This document shows, one piece after another, positions 19,750 through 34,150 of a stretch of DNA of 47,747 bases. The first letter of the stretch is position 1; every line of letters starts with the position of its first letter. The notes under the pieces are model-generated. The model did not search any database and was not told where the DNA came from. It saw only the letters and a program-made list of their open reading frames with translations. The DNA lies in contig NC_069008.1 of the NCBI RefSeq assembly GCF_001194135.2, positions 16,438,517 to 16,486,263 of the forward strand. The letters are read 5' to 3'. A program made the translations under genes and the position numbers. The DNA is from Octopus bimaculoides. Taxonomy: Eukaryota.

Positions 19750-20210
19750 TTACAACAAACTAGCATTGATATGTGAGGAATAAAGATGGTTACATGTGTT
19801 ACTGAGTGTGGCATGCATCAGACATGCCCAGAAATAGTTGAAGAGCTACAACAAAATAGCATTGATGTCAGTGCGAGGAATAATAAAGATAGTGACACAT
19901 GTCAATGCATCTGGCATGCTACACACACAGCCAGAAAATAGTTTATAACAGAATAGCATTGATGTCAGTGCGAGGAATAATAAAGATAGTGACACATGTC
20001 ACTGCATCTGGTATAACCAGACATGTCCCAATGTGAAGAATAAAGATGGTGGCACAGACCACTACATCTGGCTCGCAAAATGGATATCCAGACATAGTAA
20101 AAGATCTTTCAGTAAAAGACTGAAAATTTCATCCAATATTTGCTGAGGTCAGCAGACATAGTTAAATAGCTACAACATGCGAATAGGAAATATGGTCGCC
20201 CATGCCAACA
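19750..20210 (+). repeat. Ankyrin-repeat-derived cassette (duplicated together with the adjacent Merlin)
   Basis: Near-identical to about 15990-16325. Confidence 0.65.
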
Positions 20211-20872
20211 AGTCAAAGTTGTCATTGCAGAAAATATTTCACAGAGTCTTTCATTTCGTGTTCGAGGCACCTATATCTACTTTGGCTTTATATTCCGGAG
20301 TAGATAATAAAACTGCGATCCAGTGGTATGAGTTATGTCGAAAAGTGTGTTCGGGGAAGATGCTTCGAGACAAAGCTTTGCTCAGTGGTCCAAGTCATGA
20401 GGTGGAAAAAGAGGAGAGTTTGTACTTTAAAAGGAAGAGCCACGTAGGGAGAATAGGCCATCAAACGTGGGTTGTCGGGTGCTATGACCCCACTGTGAAA
20501 AAAGGGTTCCTTCAACGTGTACCTGATAGAAGCGCAGCAACACTTGAAGCAGTTATAATTGAATATGTGTTACCGGGTACTATAGTACATACTGACAAAT
20601 GGGGCAGCTATAGGAATCCACAACAGCTGGGTTACATACACAAAACAGTTAACCACTCAACGAATTTCGTCAACCCTGAAACCGGCGCTTGCACGAATCA
20701 CATGGAGGCCTATTGGTCCCAAATTAAAAGACGGCTGAAGTATGTGACTGGATCAACGGGCGACATGAAATGGTCCTGCGTCGATGAGTCAATGTATCGA
20801 GAAATGTATGGATTTACTGTGAAGGAAAACTTTGAGAATTTCGATACATTTCTGACATGTGAAAATTTCTAA
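20211..20872 (+). pseudogene. Merlin transposase, lineage 3 copy b (open frame, 5'-truncated, first catalytic Asp lost)
   Basis: SKLSL...AIQWYELCRKVC...GPSHEVEKEES...WVVGCYD...VPDRSAATL...PGTIVHTDKWGSY...HKTVNHSTNFVNPETGACTNHMEAYWS is a classic ISXO2-like DDE fold, but with EKEES in place of E(I/V)DES. Confidence 0.92.
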
Positions 20873-20994: not shown

Positions 20995-21222
20995 GATTGG
21001 ATTGCTGTGTCCGTCACCCTGATTGGCTCTTATTTGCGCAGCATTTGTCAACAGGGTGCATATCAACCAATCGTGGCCTTCTGTTAATGTCACGTGAGAG
21101 AGAGTTCTCTGCTGTTTTCCTGAGCCCCCTTTTTATCTATAAATAGCCCTGCTTCATCCACGCCAGTTGGCCACGACTTTAGACTTCTCACAGAACACAG
21201 CTCCAGCCAGTTTCCAGCAATG
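20995..21222 (+). promoter_or_regulatory. Pol II-type promoter signature
   Basis: ATTGG at about 20996 and 21024, CCAAT at about 21068, E-box CACGTG at 21091, TATAAATA at 21138, initiator-like CAGT with A at 21165 (27 nt from the TATA), and ATG at 21220. Confidence 0.5.
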
Positions 21223-21542
21223 ACGTCAACACCACCAGCAGAGTACACGTTAACAACAGCAACCGTGGTTCTGTCTCAACACAGTTTGTGTGGATTGTTT
21301 CCACCACGAAGTCAACAGCCAGATACATGCGAGGATCTTCTGCACCAAGTAACCGGTCACAGCATCGACGCTCAACTTTACACACAACATGTGATACCTC
21401 AGCTCTGCTATTTGGCCACGACCTCTTGCGTATGGACATTCTACCTACTGTGTAACTCTTCTATGAACTGGTACTCTCTAATCTTTTTGTTCAGGACTCA
21501 TAGTCTGTTACAGACTTATTCCAGGTTTTGTATTTCTCACTC

Positions 21543-21739
21543 ACACCGGGCGAAATGCTTAGCGGTATTTCGTCTGCCCGCTACGTTCTGAGTTCAAATT
21601 CCGCCGAGGTCGACTTTGCCTATCATCCTTTCGGGGTCGATTAAATAAGTACCAGTTACGCACTGGGGTCGATATAATCGATTTAATCCGTTTGTCTGTC
21701 CCCTCCGTGTGTAGCCCCTTGTGGGTAGTAAAGAAATAA
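21543..21739 (+). mobile_element. SINE family 'B', 5'-truncated
   Basis: ccgggcgaaatgcttagcggtatttcgtctgcc...gagttcaaattccgccgaggtcgactttgcc...agccccttgtgggtagtaaagaaata. Confidence 0.9.
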
Positions 21740-21749
21740 CACACACATA

Positions 21750-22494
21750 TTGTATACATACTGTTGTTCATACGAAGATTTCGAACATAACATACCAGTA
21801 ACTAGAGATGAAGGTAAACTAAAAAACATTATACAATGGAGAAAAGTTCCAACTGAATCATTTCAATTTAACAATAATGTAAAAGTAACAACAACAGAAC
21901 AAGAATTAAATGCAGAAGAATTAATGAGTCTTTACAATACGGGTAGATGGAAAATGTTACGCGCAGATGACACTTGGGAATACACTTGGGTAAATCGTAC
22001 ACCAAGTTGGTTTAATGCATCTGACTTCGATGCACTGGCTGGTCACATTACATACGGAGAAATAGGAAATGATGCAGAAATAGCTTGTGAAATAAATGCA
22101 TTTCAAAACAATACAGAAAAATTGGGTCCCAGAAAAAGTAGCTAACAGAACTACATGGAATGATATGTTAAATGAAACTAAAGTACCAAGTAGATCTATA
22201 TTAACTCAAATGCCAATTAATCCTTCAAATCCACCTCCTATAGCAGCACTAGATCCAATACCTTTATTAGACGCAAAAAACAACGCAGCAAAAGTAAACT
22301 TCTTATCAATAGACTATTTTAGTGAAATAGACTTTGAAAAACCAAGCGGTTCACCACAATTTACTGGTTACTTACCAAGAATTCCTGCAGCAACTAAAAC
22401 ATGTCCACTTAATCCCGAAAATAAAATGAATTTATGTCAATGGCCACAAGGTCTTAGAACATACCCCAGCACTACTTTTCCTGCAATGCGTTAA
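21750..22494 (+). pseudogene. Parvovirus-like capsid (VP) C-terminal two-thirds, one frameshift near 22135
   Basis: WKMLRADDTWEYTW resembles the parvoviral '(M/L)RTGD..f.w' motif. PPPIAALDPIPLLDAKNNAAKVNFLSIDYFSEIDFE resembles the terminal jelly-roll strands of small invertebrate parvovirus capsids. The two ORFs are joined across an A5 run. Confidence 0.55.
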
Positions 22495-23801
22495 TATTAT
22501 ATTTTATTCTATTACAGCAAAATCAAGAACATTTATATACAGCTATATATCCATGGTTATCATCAGAACAATTTCATTGGCATTCAGATCTAGAATTACC
22601 TACAGACAACATTTCTGAAATACATACAAACGAAAACGATATAAATCAAGACGATGCAGACGTACGCAATGCAAAAAGATTATTACGATTCATAAACAAC
22701 AGACAAGCAATTGTCATTTTTCATAGAGCTGAAGATATGATGGACAGAAACAAATACTGGAATACAATAAACCACTTCCATATCCTATGGAAATGCAAAT
22801 CAGAGAGAAGTTCAGCAAATGACAGTACTTGGCAAAAAATTACACAAGAATACTGGAAAGCAACTGGATACACATAAAATACCAAACACACAAAGAGTAA
22901 AATTTCCAGCTGCATTAGCAAACTACTTTTGCAAACCTCCAAAAGTTTTCTTATTAAAAACATTATGTCCAGCAATTCAAGAGTTAAATATATGGTGTAA
23001 TGAAGAATATTCATACACAGATAAAACTTCCACTATACAACAACCATCTATCTCTTTCGAACAACCAACTTTCGTCAATTCCAATGGGAAATCAATGAAA
23101 CTCTCCAGCTACATCAAATACTTATATGGCTCAAAAAGAATATGCTAATTTCGAAGAAATGAAACAATGAAAATTTTTTAGGTGCTCTAGCTCATCCAAT
23201 GTTTGATACCATAGCTAAAAAAGTTGCAGAAGCTTCAAAAATGGAAACTTTAGCCACATGTTTCATTAAAAAATATCAAAACATGAAATGGAACAAATTT
23301 CATATTCATCAGTACCATACAGTATCAACTAGTCTCCGTATTTTCGAAAACCTTCTAAAAATTCAAACCATAGATATCAGTAATTTCGTCAACAACATAT
23401 GGAATATTTTAGCTCAAAAAATTCCGAAAATAAATACTTTCGCACTAGAAGGTGTACCAAGTTCCGGAAAAAGTTACATAGCAAGAAGTAACTCTGCAAT
23501 GTTCAGATATTCAGAAACAATACAAGGAACATCAAGTTTCCCTTCCCAAGACATGTATGAAACAGAACTTTGCCTTTTCGAAGAACCAAACACGACACTC
23601 AAAACTCTTCAAACATTCAAGTTAACAGAAGGAGCCGACACTGCTGTCGCTGTAAAGTTTAAACCTAGTGTTACAATAAAAAGAACACCAATAATAATTA
23701 CCAGTAATTATCCTTTCGATACTTTAGCACCAACTGACGAAAAAGAAGCTTTCAAACAACGTATTGTTTATATTGCCGCATGCACACACACACACAGCTG
23801 A
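22440..23801 (+). pseudogene. Parvovirus NS1-like replication protein: HUH endonuclease plus SF3 helicase (about 450 codons, 1 stop and about 3 frameshifts)
   Basis: HUH motif HFHILW at 22773-22790; catalytic YxxK-type NYFCKPPK at 22921-22944; Walker A GVPSSGKS at 23451-23474; Walker B LCLFEEP; B' motif EG..TAVAVKFK; motif C PIIITSN; FKQR. Confidence 0.9.
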
Positions 23802-24113
23802 CTACCTAATAAACTCACTCTCTATATATAACTAACAGTTGTCTCACTCTCTCTTATCCTGCAGGCACTTGTTCGCATCTCACATGCGAGCCCTCTTATG
23901 TTATATTATAGGTTTTGTGTCGACCGTGCGACTCATTTGAATAAAAAAAAAAAATCAAAGGACCTGTACATGTAGAGTAGATGAGCTAGCAGAGAAGTCA
24001 AGGAAATATACCAAGACAGAAGATCAGATGAGAGAGATAAAGTATGGTGAATGTAGTAGAGTAGTGGTTCCCAACCTGGGGTCCACGAGCTAAATTCAAA
24101 ATTTCATACATAC

Positions 24114-24116
<3 letters not shown>

Positions 24117-24161
<45 letters not shown>

Positions 24162-24305
24162 ATATATATATATATGTAATCAATATGTGTATACAAGTAT
24201 ATATGTGTGTGTATGTATATATATATGTATGTATATATACATGTATGTGTATGTATATATATATGTAATCAATATATGTGTATACAAGTATATATATGTG
24301 TATAT
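24117..24305. repeat. (TG)n/(TA)n compound microsatellite
   Basis: Seen directly in the sequence. Confidence 0.95.
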
Positions 24306-24519: not shown

Positions 24520-24730
24520 TCAAATTTTGGCACAAGGCCAGCAATTGAAGGGGGGGGGGACAAGGGGTGAAGTGGATTACATTGACCCCAGTGCTCAACT
24601 GGCACTCATCTTATCACTACCCCACCACCTGAAATGATGAAAAATGAAGTCAACTTTAGCAGGGCTTGAACTCAGAACATAACAGACAAACTGCTGCTAA
24701 GCATTTTGCCTGGCATGCTAACAATTCTGA
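24520..24730 (-). mobile_element. Diverged SINE family 'B'-like copy
   Basis: attacattgaccccagtgctcaactggcac...gaagtcaactttagcagggcttgaactcagaac...gctaagcattttgcctggcatgctaac. Confidence 0.65.
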
Positions 24731-25511: not shown

Positions 25512-27254
25512 TCAATTGTCTCCTATTTCAGGCGTTTCGCAATGAATAGGCTTCCCCCCAGTGTGTATCCGCCTGTGCCTTTTTAAGTGACTGTTTGTGA
25601 TAAATGCTTTCCCACAAATTTCACAGCAATAAAGTTTTTCTCCGGTGTGTATTTTTCTGTGAGTCGTTAAAGAACTGTTGTAGACAAAAGATTTACCACA
25701 GATTTCACAATGACATGATTTTTCTCCACTGTGACTTATCATATGCGTTGTTAAATAACTTCTAGACACAAAGGATTTACCACACACTTCGCAGTGGAAT
25801 GGCTTCTGTCCAGTGTGTATTCTCATGTGTCTAGTTAAGACACTATTATCAACAAATGACTTTCTACAAATATCACAATGGAATGGTTTCTCTCCAGTGT
25901 GGCTACGTTTGTGAACTAAAAGATGAGAATTGTTAACAAACGGCTTCCCGCATATTTCACAGTGGAACCGTCTCTCTCCAGTGTGTTTCATCTTATGTGT
26001 CTTTAGGAGACCATTGGTGACAAAGGACTGACCACACACTTCACAATGGAAAGGTTTTTCTCCAGTGTGAATTCTCTTGTGCGTAGTTAGATAACTGTTC
26101 GTGATAAACGATTTCCCACATATCTCACAGTGATAGGGTTTTTCTCCAGTGTGGCTACGTTTGTGAACTTCAAGATGTGGATTATTACGGAACGATTTAC
26201 CACAGATCTGACAGTGAAATGGTCTCTCTTCAGAGTGGATTCTTCTGTGTTTTGTTAAGACGCTTTTATTGACAAAATACTTGCCGCATATTTCACAACA
26301 AAAAGGTTTCAATCCGGTGTGTAGCAGTTTATGTTTTGTCAACTCACTGTTAGAAATGAACGATCTTGCACATAAGTCGCAATGGAATGGTCTTTCTCCA
26401 GTGTGACGACGTATGTGAATGACCAGATATGAATTGTTAACAAATGATTTCTCACATATTTCACAATAAAATAGTTTTTCTCCGGTGTGTGTTATATTGT
26501 GAACAACGAGACTAGATTTATCACAGAATGATTTTCCACATATTTCACAGTGGAATGGCCTTATTCCACTGTGTATTCTTGTATGTTTTGTCAAGTCACT
26601 TTTACAAATGAAGGCTTTCCCACAATCTTGACAACCAAAGGGTTTTTCCCCTGTATGTATCCTTTTATGCTTTGTTAAATCACAATTAGAAACAAACGAT
26701 TTCCCGCACACATCACAATGATAGGGTCTCTCTCCAGTGTGGATTCTTTTGTGAACAATGAGACTAGAATTAACAGAGAAAAATTTGCCACAAATTTCAC
26801 AGTAAAATGGCTTTTCTCCAGTGTGAACTCTTTTGTGTGCTGTTAAGTTACTGTTGGACACGAAACTCTTCCCACACTGTTCACAGTGGAAGGGTTTATC
26901 TCCAGAATGTACCCTTGTGTGTGTTTTTAAGTGACTACTGCTGAGAAAAGATTTCCCACATATCTCGCAATGATGAGGTCTTTCTCCTGTGTGGATTCTT
27001 TGGTGATTTCTTAAATAGCTAAAATACACAAAATACTTCCCACATACATCACAGTGAAATAGTTTTTTCTTACTGTGTATTTCTTTGTGTAAGATGACTT
27101 CGTATTCTGTAGAGAATGTCTTCCTACAAATCTCGCAGCGATATTCAGGAACACTTCCGTTTTCAGCTTTCTCATTTTCGTCTGTTTCTCTAACTGTATC
27201 TACATTGTTAATAACAGTTGCGTTACAAGTGTCCAAGTGATTAACGTTCTCCAT
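25512..27254 (-). CDS. C2H2 zinc-finger protein, 19 tandem fingers, no recognisable effector domain
   Basis: Intact 580-aa ORF with 19 CX2CX12HX3H units and TGEKP-type linkers. There is a short acidic N-terminus, and the final finger is truncated. Confidence 0.93.
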   Translation of the reverse strand: MENVNHLDTCNATVINNVDTVRETDENEKAENGSVPEYRCEICRKTFSTEYEVILHKEIHSKKKLFHCDVCGKYFVYFSYLRNHQRIHTGERPHHCEICGKSFLSSSHLKTHTRVHSGDKPFHCEQCGKSFVSNSNLTAHKRVHTGEKPFYCEICGKFFSVNSSLIVHKRIHTGERPYHCDVCGKSFVSNCDLTKHKRIHTGEKPFGCQDCGKAFICKSDLTKHTRIHSGIRPFHCEICGKSFCDKSSLVVHNITHTGEKLFYCEICEKSFVNNSYLVIHIRRHTGERPFHCDLCARSFISNSELTKHKLLHTGLKPFCCEICGKYFVNKSVLTKHRRIHSEERPFHCQICGKSFRNNPHLEVHKRSHTGEKPYHCEICGKSFITNSYLTTHKRIHTGEKPFHCEVCGQSFVTNGLLKTHKMKHTGERRFHCEICGKPFVNNSHLLVHKRSHTGEKPFHCDICRKSFVDNSVLTRHMRIHTGQKPFHCEVCGKSFVSRSYLTTHMISHSGEKSCHCEICGKSFVYNSSLTTHRKIHTGEKLYCCEICGKAFITNSHLKRHRRIHTGGKPIHCETPEIGDN

Positions 27255-33054: not shown

Positions 33055-34150
33055 GTTTACCCTTATTTTATCGACTCCGAAATGACAGAAGACAAAGTCG
33101 AACTCAGAATGTGAAAAGAGACGAAATACTGCCATGTATTTTTATCTGGCCGGCTAACGATTCTGCCACCTCGCTGCCTTCATAATAATAATTCTTTTTA
33201 AAAACACTAAGCCTAAAATTTTCAAGGAAGTGGATTAATCGATTATACCAACCTCAGTGCCCAATTGGTACTCACTGTNNNNNNNNNNNNNNNNNNNNNN
33301 NNNNNNNNNNNNNNNNNNNNNNATCGATTACATCGACTCTAGTATTTGATTGGTAATTATTTATGGATACCTGCAGAAGTATGCCCTCCCCACCAAAAAC
33401 TTATGTAATGTGTACACGCCCAGCGTTTCTTTTTCCACCCTATATTACGATATAATCGTAATCTGCACTATGTGAGATGTATTTGAAGGAAATTTTATTA
33501 AAAAATAAGGATCTCTATCGCAAACAGCAGGAAGTTTCTTCAGCTGAATACACGTCGTTGATTGGTTAAAATTACCGAAATATGACAACTTTAACACGAA
33601 ATTTTGTTGAAAGTAAACCGTGTTCAGCGTGAGAAATTACACCAGTATACGAAGTTCCAAACTGTTTCTGTAAGCCAAATTGAAGAGATACAAAAAATAA
33701 ACCATTTTTCTGGAATTTATGGGGAAACAAATTACCCCTAATGAATGAAAAGTAAAGTCAACTGCTGAGAAATTCTAATTCAGGACATAAACACATAAAA
33801 TGCCGCTAAGCATTTTGCCCGGCGTTGTAACAACTCTGCAGCTCACTGCATTAGTTGGAGAAAATAATCCTTTCAGGAATAAAGCCTAAGAAAGTGTTTC
33901 GTTAAGAAAACAAGTGTTGCCCGTCAAATCGCAAAGATCCATCCTTTCCACTGTAGGTACACGTCCTGGAATTCTAGGGAAGAGGGCTAGTTGATTTCAT
34001 CGATCCCAGAACATCATTCGTATTTATCAATCCCGAAAAGATGAAAATCAAGGTCAACCTCGGCGGAATTTGAACTCAGCACGTAAAGTCAGACAAACAT
34101 TGTTAAGCGTTTTGTACGGATTGTTAACAACTCTGCCAGGTCGCCGCCTT
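33055..34150 (-). mobile_element. Cluster of diverged family 'B' SINE fragments (about 33055-33180, 33730-33850, 33990-34150)
   Basis: Recurrent gtcaacctcggcggaatttgaactcag / gctaagcattttgcccggcg / ctctgccagg motifs. Confidence 0.65.

Follow-up and report, generated by a model that had tools for sequence, protein, structure and literature searches.

A capsid-first VP-NS1 junction in an endogenous parvoviral element of Octopus bimaculoides and in related parvoviral contigs

To our knowledge, all described members of the Parvoviridae either place the non-structural (NS) gene upstream of the capsid (VP) gene on the same strand (monosense genomes) or carry the two on opposite strands (ambisense genomes); this arrangement is universal among them and is not a formal demarcation criterion. 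In ambisense densoviruses, an NS3 open reading frame (ORF) lies directly upstream of NS1/NS2 and is spliced out of the RNA made from the terminal promoter to express NS1. Here we analyse a 47,747-nucleotide (nt) stretch of the Octopus bimaculoides genome (contig NC_069008.1, positions 16,438,517 to 16,486,263, forward strand; hereafter the window, with positions counted from its first letter), in which an endogenous parvoviral element carries a remnant of a VP gene followed, on the same strand, by a remnant of NS1.

The closest named relatives of the octopus NS1 are unclassified Parvoviridae sp. from bird cloaca, such as Turdus hortulorum parvoviridae sp. (QTE03882.1, P0020), which is 35% identical to the helicase piece of the window, and the Motacilla cinerea and Emberiza spodocephala parvoviridae sp.; this divergent branch has been described as 'either monosense or ambisense', with an organisation like that of other parvoviruses and no mention of a VP-first order (PMC9896142). 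For VP, the nearest relatives are Penaeus monodon metallodensovirus (PmMDV, Metallovirinae) and infectious hypodermal and haematopoietic necrosis virus (IHHNV)/Penaeus stylirostris densovirus (Penbrevirinae), the solved capsids of which match the VP profile described below. These crustacean parvoviruses share with the octopus-type lineage a ~4-kb genome, hairpin ends and aquatic invertebrate hosts, but PmMDV and the IHHNV-type viruses have NS upstream of VP and lack the phospholipase A2 (PLA2) domain (PMC11357303), whereas the octopus-type VP has PLA2 and the gene order is reversed. In megaparvovirus-like genomes (~6.4 kb), a PLA2-bearing 5' ORF that ends in a splice donor also precedes NS1 on its strand, but it is a cassette separate from the capsid VP, which comes after NS1 as usual, whereas in octopus-type viruses PLA2 and jelly roll form one protein encoded before NS1 (PMC13426907). 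The same 2026 overview recognises only monosense and ambisense layouts and does not mention a capsid-first one, and in the open-access literature we found neither a description of a VP-first parvovirus organisation nor a report of parvoviruses or endogenous parvoviral elements in cephalopods.

The VP-NS1 junction of the octopus element recurs both in divergent endogenous copies and in small contigs with both genes intact, and we therefore consider the VP-first order to be very probably native to the source lineage. As an account of the locus as a whole, we have good confidence that the octopus element is a fossil of a natively VP-first lineage of linear, hairpin-ended parvoviruses.

VP and NS1 remnants in the octopus window

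The base reading, a three-frame translation of positions 21000-24300 together with the ORF list, gave two successive stop-free pieces on the plus strand followed by pieces bearing replication motifs; all comparisons were made with the sequences unaltered. The viral segment covers 21777-23801 (+), about 2 kb, and consists of the VP remnant and then the NS1 remnant (Table 1), with 23 nt between the VP stop and the first NS1-homologous codon. This segment is an endogenous parvoviral element, dead and truncated at both ends: host genes and repeats flank it, the genome termini are absent from the copy, and coding integrity has been lost through one frameshift and no in-frame stops in VP and two to three frameshifts and one in-frame stop in NS1. 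As a protein-coding gene, the octopus copy most likely has no function. When the whole window was compared, no leader, PLA2 region, NS1 C-terminus or hairpin was found elsewhere in it, and nothing viral was found at 23802-23955. The fragment spans the internal VP/NS1 junction of a ~4-kb virus genome, and it would have originated as a subgenomic piece of viral DNA captured in the germ line.

Table 1. Features of the octopus element and its neighbourhood in the window, and related contigs with both genes intact.
Feature	Position or length	Strand	Description
VP remnant	21777-22494	+	C-terminal ~45% of VP gene; native stop codon 22492-22494
Pyrimidine-rich tract	22495-22517	+	Ends TTACAG; directly after VP stop; predicted 3' splice acceptor for NS1 exon
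NS1 remnant	22518-23801	+	Endonuclease domain and SF3 helicase core; similarity ends 23768, frame closes 23801
HUH endonuclease, motif-bearing part	22542-22944	+	N-terminal (A)IYPW motif through HUH to YxxK
HUH motif	22773-22790	+	HFHILW; read from sequence
Catalytic Tyr motif YxxK	22918-22944	+	ANYFCKPPK; read from sequence
SF3 helicase core	23325-23708	+	Pfam and motifs
Walker A	23451-23474	+	GVPSSGKS; read from sequence
Walker B	23571-23588	+	CLFEEP; read from sequence
Helicase motif B'	23655-23672	+	Read from sequence
Helicase motif C	23691-23708	+	IIITSN; read from sequence
SINE-like repeat	21542-21739	+	tRNA-derived; neighbour, not part of element; 38 nt upstream of first VP-homologous base
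Further SINE-like copies	1740-1947; 24562-24713; ~33734-34085	-; -; 	From blastn of region against window; inverted repeats
Contig L008	4017 nt		ENA metagenome; 525-aa PLA2-bearing VP, then 593-aa NS1
Contig L009	4083 nt		JGI; VP homologue directly upstream of NS1, same strand
Contigs L010/L013	3974 and 4079 nt		VP homologue directly upstream of NS1, same strand
Contig L012	3471 nt		VP homologue directly upstream of NS1, same strand
Contig L014	3876 nt		VP homologue directly upstream of NS1, same strand
Contig L020	4410 nt		632-aa VP with PLA2, directly upstream of NS1, same strand

The upstream remnant was matched by tblastn, over window positions 21777-22491, to residues 294-536 of a 536-amino-acid (aa) ORF of Octopus vulgaris (70% identity; E values 4e-52 and 3e-48). 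Because the match covers only these residues, the window keeps no more than the C-terminal part of VP; the 5' truncation has removed the PLA2 domain together with the beginning of the jelly roll. A frameshift-aware alignment gave 74% identity over 234 codons, and tblastn against the whole window revealed no further VP similarity elsewhere in it. The second VP piece has the homologues P0004-P0007; for the first piece, a word-indexed homology search gave no match. The Octopus vulgaris ORF (L004:11933-13543, chromosome OX597817.1) is intact and carries an N-terminal PLA2 domain (PF08398, 4.6e-13) that aligns to VP1u of adeno-associated virus (AAV), and the same domain is present in the intact VPs of L008 (2.4e-12) and L020 (3.1e-12). 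A profile built from four intact VP homologues matches the solved parvoviral capsids 9nek (9e-11), PmMDV 6wh3 (4e-9), 9n5l (6.5e-6) and IHHNV-type 3n7x (2e-5), and the L010 VP matches Pfam IHHNV_capsid (6.6e-5). As judged by this similarity, the upstream gene is that of a parvoviral capsid protein with an N-terminal PLA2 in its full-length form.

The downstream remnant aligns, frameshift-aware, with residues 1-428 of the 631-residue intact NS1 frame of L008 at 43% identity (window 22512-23768), and approximately the last 200 residues are missing through 3' truncation. Its frameshifts number two by dynamic programming and three by frame-by-frame comparison with the endogenous relative L001. The helicase piece matches Pfam Parvo_NS1 (1.3e-10), PPV_E1_C (7e-11) and AAV2 Rep40 (2e-5), and an exhaustive phmmer search returned 805 proteins, the best intact one being P0008 of contig L008 (593 aa, 3e-70, 56% identity). 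The HUH and tyrosine motifs of the window align with NHFHIIW and CNYLVKPPR of P0008 and are also kept in L010 and L012. Against the PDB, an NS1 clade profile matched AAV2 Rep40 (1e-23), parvovirus B19 (B19V) NS1 (6e-22) and papillomavirus E1 (5e-10).

The N-terminal nuclease domain gave no sequence-level family match apart from a weak one to Rep_OBD (0.004). P0008 was modelled with AlphaFold on an alignment of 50 sequences (predicted local distance difference test, pLDDT, 76.8; moderate in the N-domain, at 57-89). Foldseek matched the model to full-length AAV2 Rep68 (3.7e-17, ~445 columns), and its best viral matches were NS proteins of unclassified wild-bird Parvoviridae sp. over the full length (5e-29). 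AAV2 Rep68/Rep40 and B19V NS1 have the same two-domain plan of HUH endonuclease and superfamily 3 (SF3) helicase at ~16-20% identity, with an N-terminal domain not detectable by sequence alone. The NS1 of the source virus is of the parvoviral type, with both domains in one protein. A single-sequence AlphaFold prediction of the window helicase piece was discarded (pLDDT 38).

The original prediction for this locus, made from the letters of the window, had placed a capsid-like ORF pair upstream of NS1 on the same strand, and both halves proved to be real (VP by tblastn, 4e-52; NS1 by phmmer, 3e-70). The HUH, YxxK and SF3 helicase motifs that it listed could all be read, at 22773-23708, and the parvoviral Tyr-to-Walker A spacing that it put at about 175 codons came out at ~180 residues, as in parvoviral NS1. 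Its boundaries need revision. The capsid, given as 21750-22494, is a capsid, but similarity begins only at 21777 and covers no more than the C-terminal ~45% of the gene; the element, drawn to 23955, ends with the NS1 frame at 23801, similarity having ceased at 23768; and the ATG at 22440 is not the start of NS1, the homologous coding sequence of which begins at 22518, after the pyrimidine tract and CAG.

The VP-first order in endogenous and intact relatives

The VP-first junction recurs in four other cephalopod-type loci, L001/L002, L005, L006 and L007, at 40-70% identity. L001/L002 are 68% identical in nucleotide sequence across window 22384-23761 (blastn), that is, from 110 nt inside the VP end through the junction; L006 holds the whole VP region, with NS1 starting within a few nucleotides after it; and L005 and L007, although more divergent (40-49% aa identity), have the same VP-NS1 order. 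The 23-nt interval between the two genes is kept in every copy. A pyrimidine tract with TTACAG follows the VP stop in every aligned copy (alignment A1: window, L001, L002, L006 and L007), and a pyrimidine tract with CAG also does so in L008, L010, L012 and L014. The VP-NS1 junction is not a local rearrangement.

Six distinct contigs of 3.5-4.4 kb carry the VP-first order with both ORFs intact (L008, L009, L010/L013, L012, L014 and L020; Table 1). Their upstream ORFs all match the VP profile (1e-55 to 1e-222), and no other ORF of capsid size was found on either strand. At the VP end of L008, nt 1-87 form a Y-shaped hairpin (DNA fold z = -5.2), after which come tandem 14-mers, a TATA-like box and a leader; AATAAA signals follow NS1 at the end of this contig. 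L009 has perfect hairpins at both contig ends (left arms 21 nt, right arms 59 nt), and L013 has a terminal palindrome at its right end. All of these hairpins lie outside the VP-NS1 block, and no contig shows terminal direct redundancy. Because hairpins flank the block, at both ends in L009 and at the VP end in L008, the source is read as a linear parvovirus and not as a circle or concatemer. The ordinary NS-first order is seen in L018, which is more distantly related. L008 bears a metagenome-style sample label, and the supplement of PMC9896142 does not mention the sample behind it; scans of IMG/VR with the Octopus vulgaris VP, the window helicase piece and an NS1 alignment returned no relatives. 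Public metagenomes contain a VP-first lineage of linear parvoviruses that has apparently gone unremarked and that has entered cephalopod genomes on several occasions.

By its proteins, the source virus belongs to the Parvoviridae. The relatives combine an SF3 helicase of parvoviral type, HUH and tyrosine motifs in the same protein and, by sequence similarity, a jelly-roll/PLA2 capsid, on genomes of 3.5-4.4 kb with hairpins read from the contigs at both ends of L009, the left end of L008 and the right end of L013. They depart from the family in gene order: in the window, the endogenous loci and the six intact contigs, VP is upstream of NS on the same strand. Circular Rep-encoding single-stranded (CRESS) DNA viruses, which have circular genomes and a compact Rep whose nuclease-helicase linker is short, do not accommodate them, given the hairpin ends, the ~180-residue Tyr-to-Walker A spacing and best matches that are all parvoviral NS1/Rep. 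Bidnaviridae, which have a gene for a protein-primed family-B DNA polymerase, a parvo-like VP and an SF3 helicase without a nuclease domain, do not accommodate them either: the intact contigs contain no further large ORF, and their NS1 keeps the HUH and tyrosine motifs.

Three other explanations of the locus were weighed. Parvoviral DNA, as in AAV, forms head-to-tail concatemers and circular episomes before integration, and the octopus copy could be a rearranged insertion of an NS-then-VP parvovirus across such a junction, with the telomeres deleted. One relative, L016 (JACSEB010000851.1, 1-2597), is in fact permuted, with NS1 residues 140-554, VP residues 189-421 and NS1 residues 1-182 in succession, part of it in a single open frame. 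Either a defective or head-to-tail genome or a faulty assembly could account for this contig, and no other relative hints at circular or concatemeric DNA. However, the spacing of only 23 nt between VP stop and NS1 homology is kept in every copy, the same junction stands in intact contigs whose hairpins lie outside the block, and, L016 apart, no relative closer than L018 has NS1 upstream of VP, so that we regard a rearranged insertion as highly unlikely. A circular VP-NS1 replicon, CRESS-like or parvo-like, would render the order meaningless; the small (~3.5-4.4 kb) unisense two-gene genomes would suit such a source, as would the permutation of L016, which is expected from a circle or a rolling-circle concatemer, and the lack of one or both termini in most contigs. 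Yet the perfect hairpins at both ends of L009, the Y-shaped hairpin of L008 with its TATA box and leader, the AATAAA signals after NS1 and the lack of terminal redundancy describe a linear molecule, parvoviral Rep/NS1 is by a wide margin the best match of the helicase profile (1e-23), and the Tyr-to-Walker A spacing is parvoviral, all of which makes a circular source very improbable.

The third explanation concerns the capsid itself. If the upstream ORF pair were an accessory non-structural gene like ambidensovirus NS3, which sits immediately ahead of NS1 on one strand and is removed by splicing, the gene order would be ordinary, and the VP pieces of the window indeed have no Pfam capsid match of their own. 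However, these pieces share 70% identity with the C-terminal portion of the 536-aa Octopus vulgaris protein, the N-terminus of which is a parvoviral PLA2 domain, the family profile matches four solved parvoviral capsids (9e-11 to 2e-5), and no other capsid-sized ORF is available on either strand of the intact contigs; the probability left to an NS3-like gene is accordingly slight in the extreme. Several observations nevertheless count against a linear, VP-first source. L016 means that head-to-tail or circular forms exist or can be mis-assembled, both termini are seen only in L009, and the intact contigs are metagenomic assemblies, the genes and ends of which were read from sequence alone. In addition, the identity of the capsid rests on sequence and profile similarity, and the VP piece of the window sits C-terminal to the segment that matches solved capsids.

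A linear, VP-first parvovirus remains the reading we prefer, and it agrees in most respects with what had been proposed beforehand. The original prediction argued for a native VP-to-NS1 order instead of a concatemer junction, which is borne out by the same junction in endogenous relatives and six intact contigs. It left the choice between an undescribed parvo-like lineage and a circular genome; the hairpins of L009 and L008 favour the former, as a linear parvovirus, over the circle. Two comparisons akin to those that it suggested came out in its favour: the profile of four intact VP homologues matches solved parvoviral capsids, and the search for relatives with the same order found VP-first genomes, with no relative closer than the distant L018 being NS-first, the permuted L016 apart.

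Proposed expression of NS1 from the second position

In most members, NS1 lacks its own start codon. The NS1 frame of L008, L010 and L012 is already open a few nucleotides from the VP stop, yet its first ATG lies beyond the HUH motif. The same contigs have, ahead of VP, a small open frame with its own ATG that ends in a GTAAGT donor; the distance from this donor to the VP ATG is 20 nt in L008, 38 nt in L010 and 25 nt in L012. A script check found that joining this donor to the acceptor after VP puts the leader ATG in frame with NS1, with phases 0+0 in L008 and 2+1 in L010/L013; the phases differ between lineages and yet match, which argues against coincidence. The cephalopod copy L006 has the same leader and donor, 21 nt before the VP start, and the window keeps the acceptor at 22495-22517, everything upstream of the VP remnant having been lost.

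In the octopus-type sub-lineage, a single promoter at the VP end would make a pre-mRNA from which VP would be translated when it is left unspliced. Joined by splicing, the leader donor and the post-VP acceptor would excise the whole VP gene as an NS1 intron and supply NS1 with the leader ATG in its own frame, no other start being available before HUH. On the conservation and phase of these sites, we find it fairly probable that NS1 in this sub-lineage is reached by splicing out VP. The nearest functional analogy would be the NS cassette of ambidensoviruses, in which splicing out an upstream ORF makes the downstream NS1 translatable; unlike in ambidensoviruses, the ORF to be spliced out would be the capsid gene itself, and there is no opposite-strand cassette.

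The relatives do not all conform to this scheme, the splice sites of which are predictions from sequence conservation and phase. The splice model does not fit L009, where the NS1 ATG overlaps the VP stop, or L020, where NS1 has its own ATG after a ~140-nt spacer. An ATG is also found at the conserved MY..IYPW position in L006, L007, P0156 and the NS1-only copies of L011, and it could serve instead; splicing therefore need not be the only route to NS1. The L012 contig begins only 42 nt before the donor, which puts the leader start beyond the contig end, and its open frame in the required phase resembles, by reading, the L010 leader peptide. For L014, the model tentatively requires a start codon that is formed by the splice itself.

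L010 (1736-1741), L012 (1403-1408) and L001 (~519-527) have VP and NS1 in one frame that is interrupted by a single stop codon. Readthrough of this stop codon to give a VP-NS1 fusion was considered as a general mechanism and rejected because in L008 and L014 the two genes are in different frames.

Two perfect tandem 14-mers (CAGTCACGTTGCAG) occupy L008:176-203, between the left hairpin and the TATA-like box, with ACGTGA motifs nearby, and CACGTGA motifs are also present upstream of VP in L006 and L004. These 14-mers and CACGTGA-type motifs are candidate NS1-binding or promoter elements.

Significance, host-side copies and chromosomal setting

Taken together, the locus and its relatives might represent a deep clade of the Parvoviridae, perhaps of subfamily rank, with inverted gene order and the capsid gene inside an intron of the NS1 mRNA, such that the balance between capsid and replicase would hang on a single terminal promoter and a single splice decision. 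In the same joint reading, the clade would have infected cephalopods on repeated occasions, as individual genomes contain several divergent endogenous lineages, and Octopus vulgaris would hold intact, amplified capsid genes with CCAAT and TATA boxes of their own, maybe expressed by the host. We consider this combination possible, at a little short of an even chance.

A VP-first clade shows that the parvoviral replication scheme does not require the NS-then-VP layout. If the proposed splicing is true, the expression logic would also differ, the capsid being the default unspliced product and the replicase requiring splicing, and the timing of early and late genes in parvoviruses becomes testable by comparison. 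As for annotation, genomes of this kind may be mis-oriented or mis-described by pipelines and in taxonomic accounts built on the NS-then-VP assumption. The element itself documents parvoviral infection of the cephalopod lineage, and it could serve as a dated fossil should orthologous copies prove traceable between species.

The Octopus vulgaris VP copies lie in the 168.36-Mb region of OX597817.1 (L004:8700-20441), where two intact 536-aa VP genes, one broken gene and two inverted partial ones are found. The copies are ~100% identical to each other and sit in ~3-kb segmental repeats within ~125-nt satellite arrays; the full copies have CCAAT and TATAAA boxes ~55-70 nt upstream of the ATG and no NS1 after them. 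They could represent a recent host-side amplification and possibly an expressed or co-opted capsid gene.

NS1 has likewise been found on its own. L011:6001-7608 and the P0011 cluster comprise eight intact NS1 genes (489-535 aa) that are nearly identical to one another and share 42% identity with the window helicase piece. They lie in large contigs of another organism (ENA assemblies, 117 kb to 1 Mb), and one copy of the cluster adjoins a Ty3/gypsy-type pol. VP remnants were looked for upstream of the intact NS1-only copies in L011 and none were found; these endogenous copies may be kept by the host. In the related NS1 copy L003 (1-650), a mariner/Tc1-like transposase remnant replaces the sequence upstream of the helicase, a transposon insertion into a viral fossil.

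The surroundings of the octopus element are ordinary animal DNA, with a C2H2 zinc-finger gene, a DDE transposase ORF, microsatellites and a repeat resembling a short interspersed nuclear element (SINE), and the zinc-finger protein of the window maps exactly to CM046628.1 (18.6-Mb chromosome record, GCA_001194135.2). Two SINE-like copies (21546-21692 and 24562-24713, inverted, 69% identity) flank the element and were considered as transposon ends. This was rejected on two grounds: further copies of the repeat are present in the window, and the viral similarity ends at some distance inward of the two flanking copies, whose inverted placement is probably due to chance.

The transposase ORF (20177-20872, intact, 231 aa) lies ~900 nt upstream of the element and is of the ISXO2/IS1595 type (Pfam 1.4e-16), the Merlin-type kind in animals; just upstream of it, at 19750-20040, are about three tandem copies of a ~97-nt unit (85-95% identity). 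The zinc-finger gene (25512-27254, minus strand, intact, 580 aa) lies directly downstream of the element. Beside it, public annotation has called a 189-aa gene with Parvo_NS1 matches on the viral remnant.

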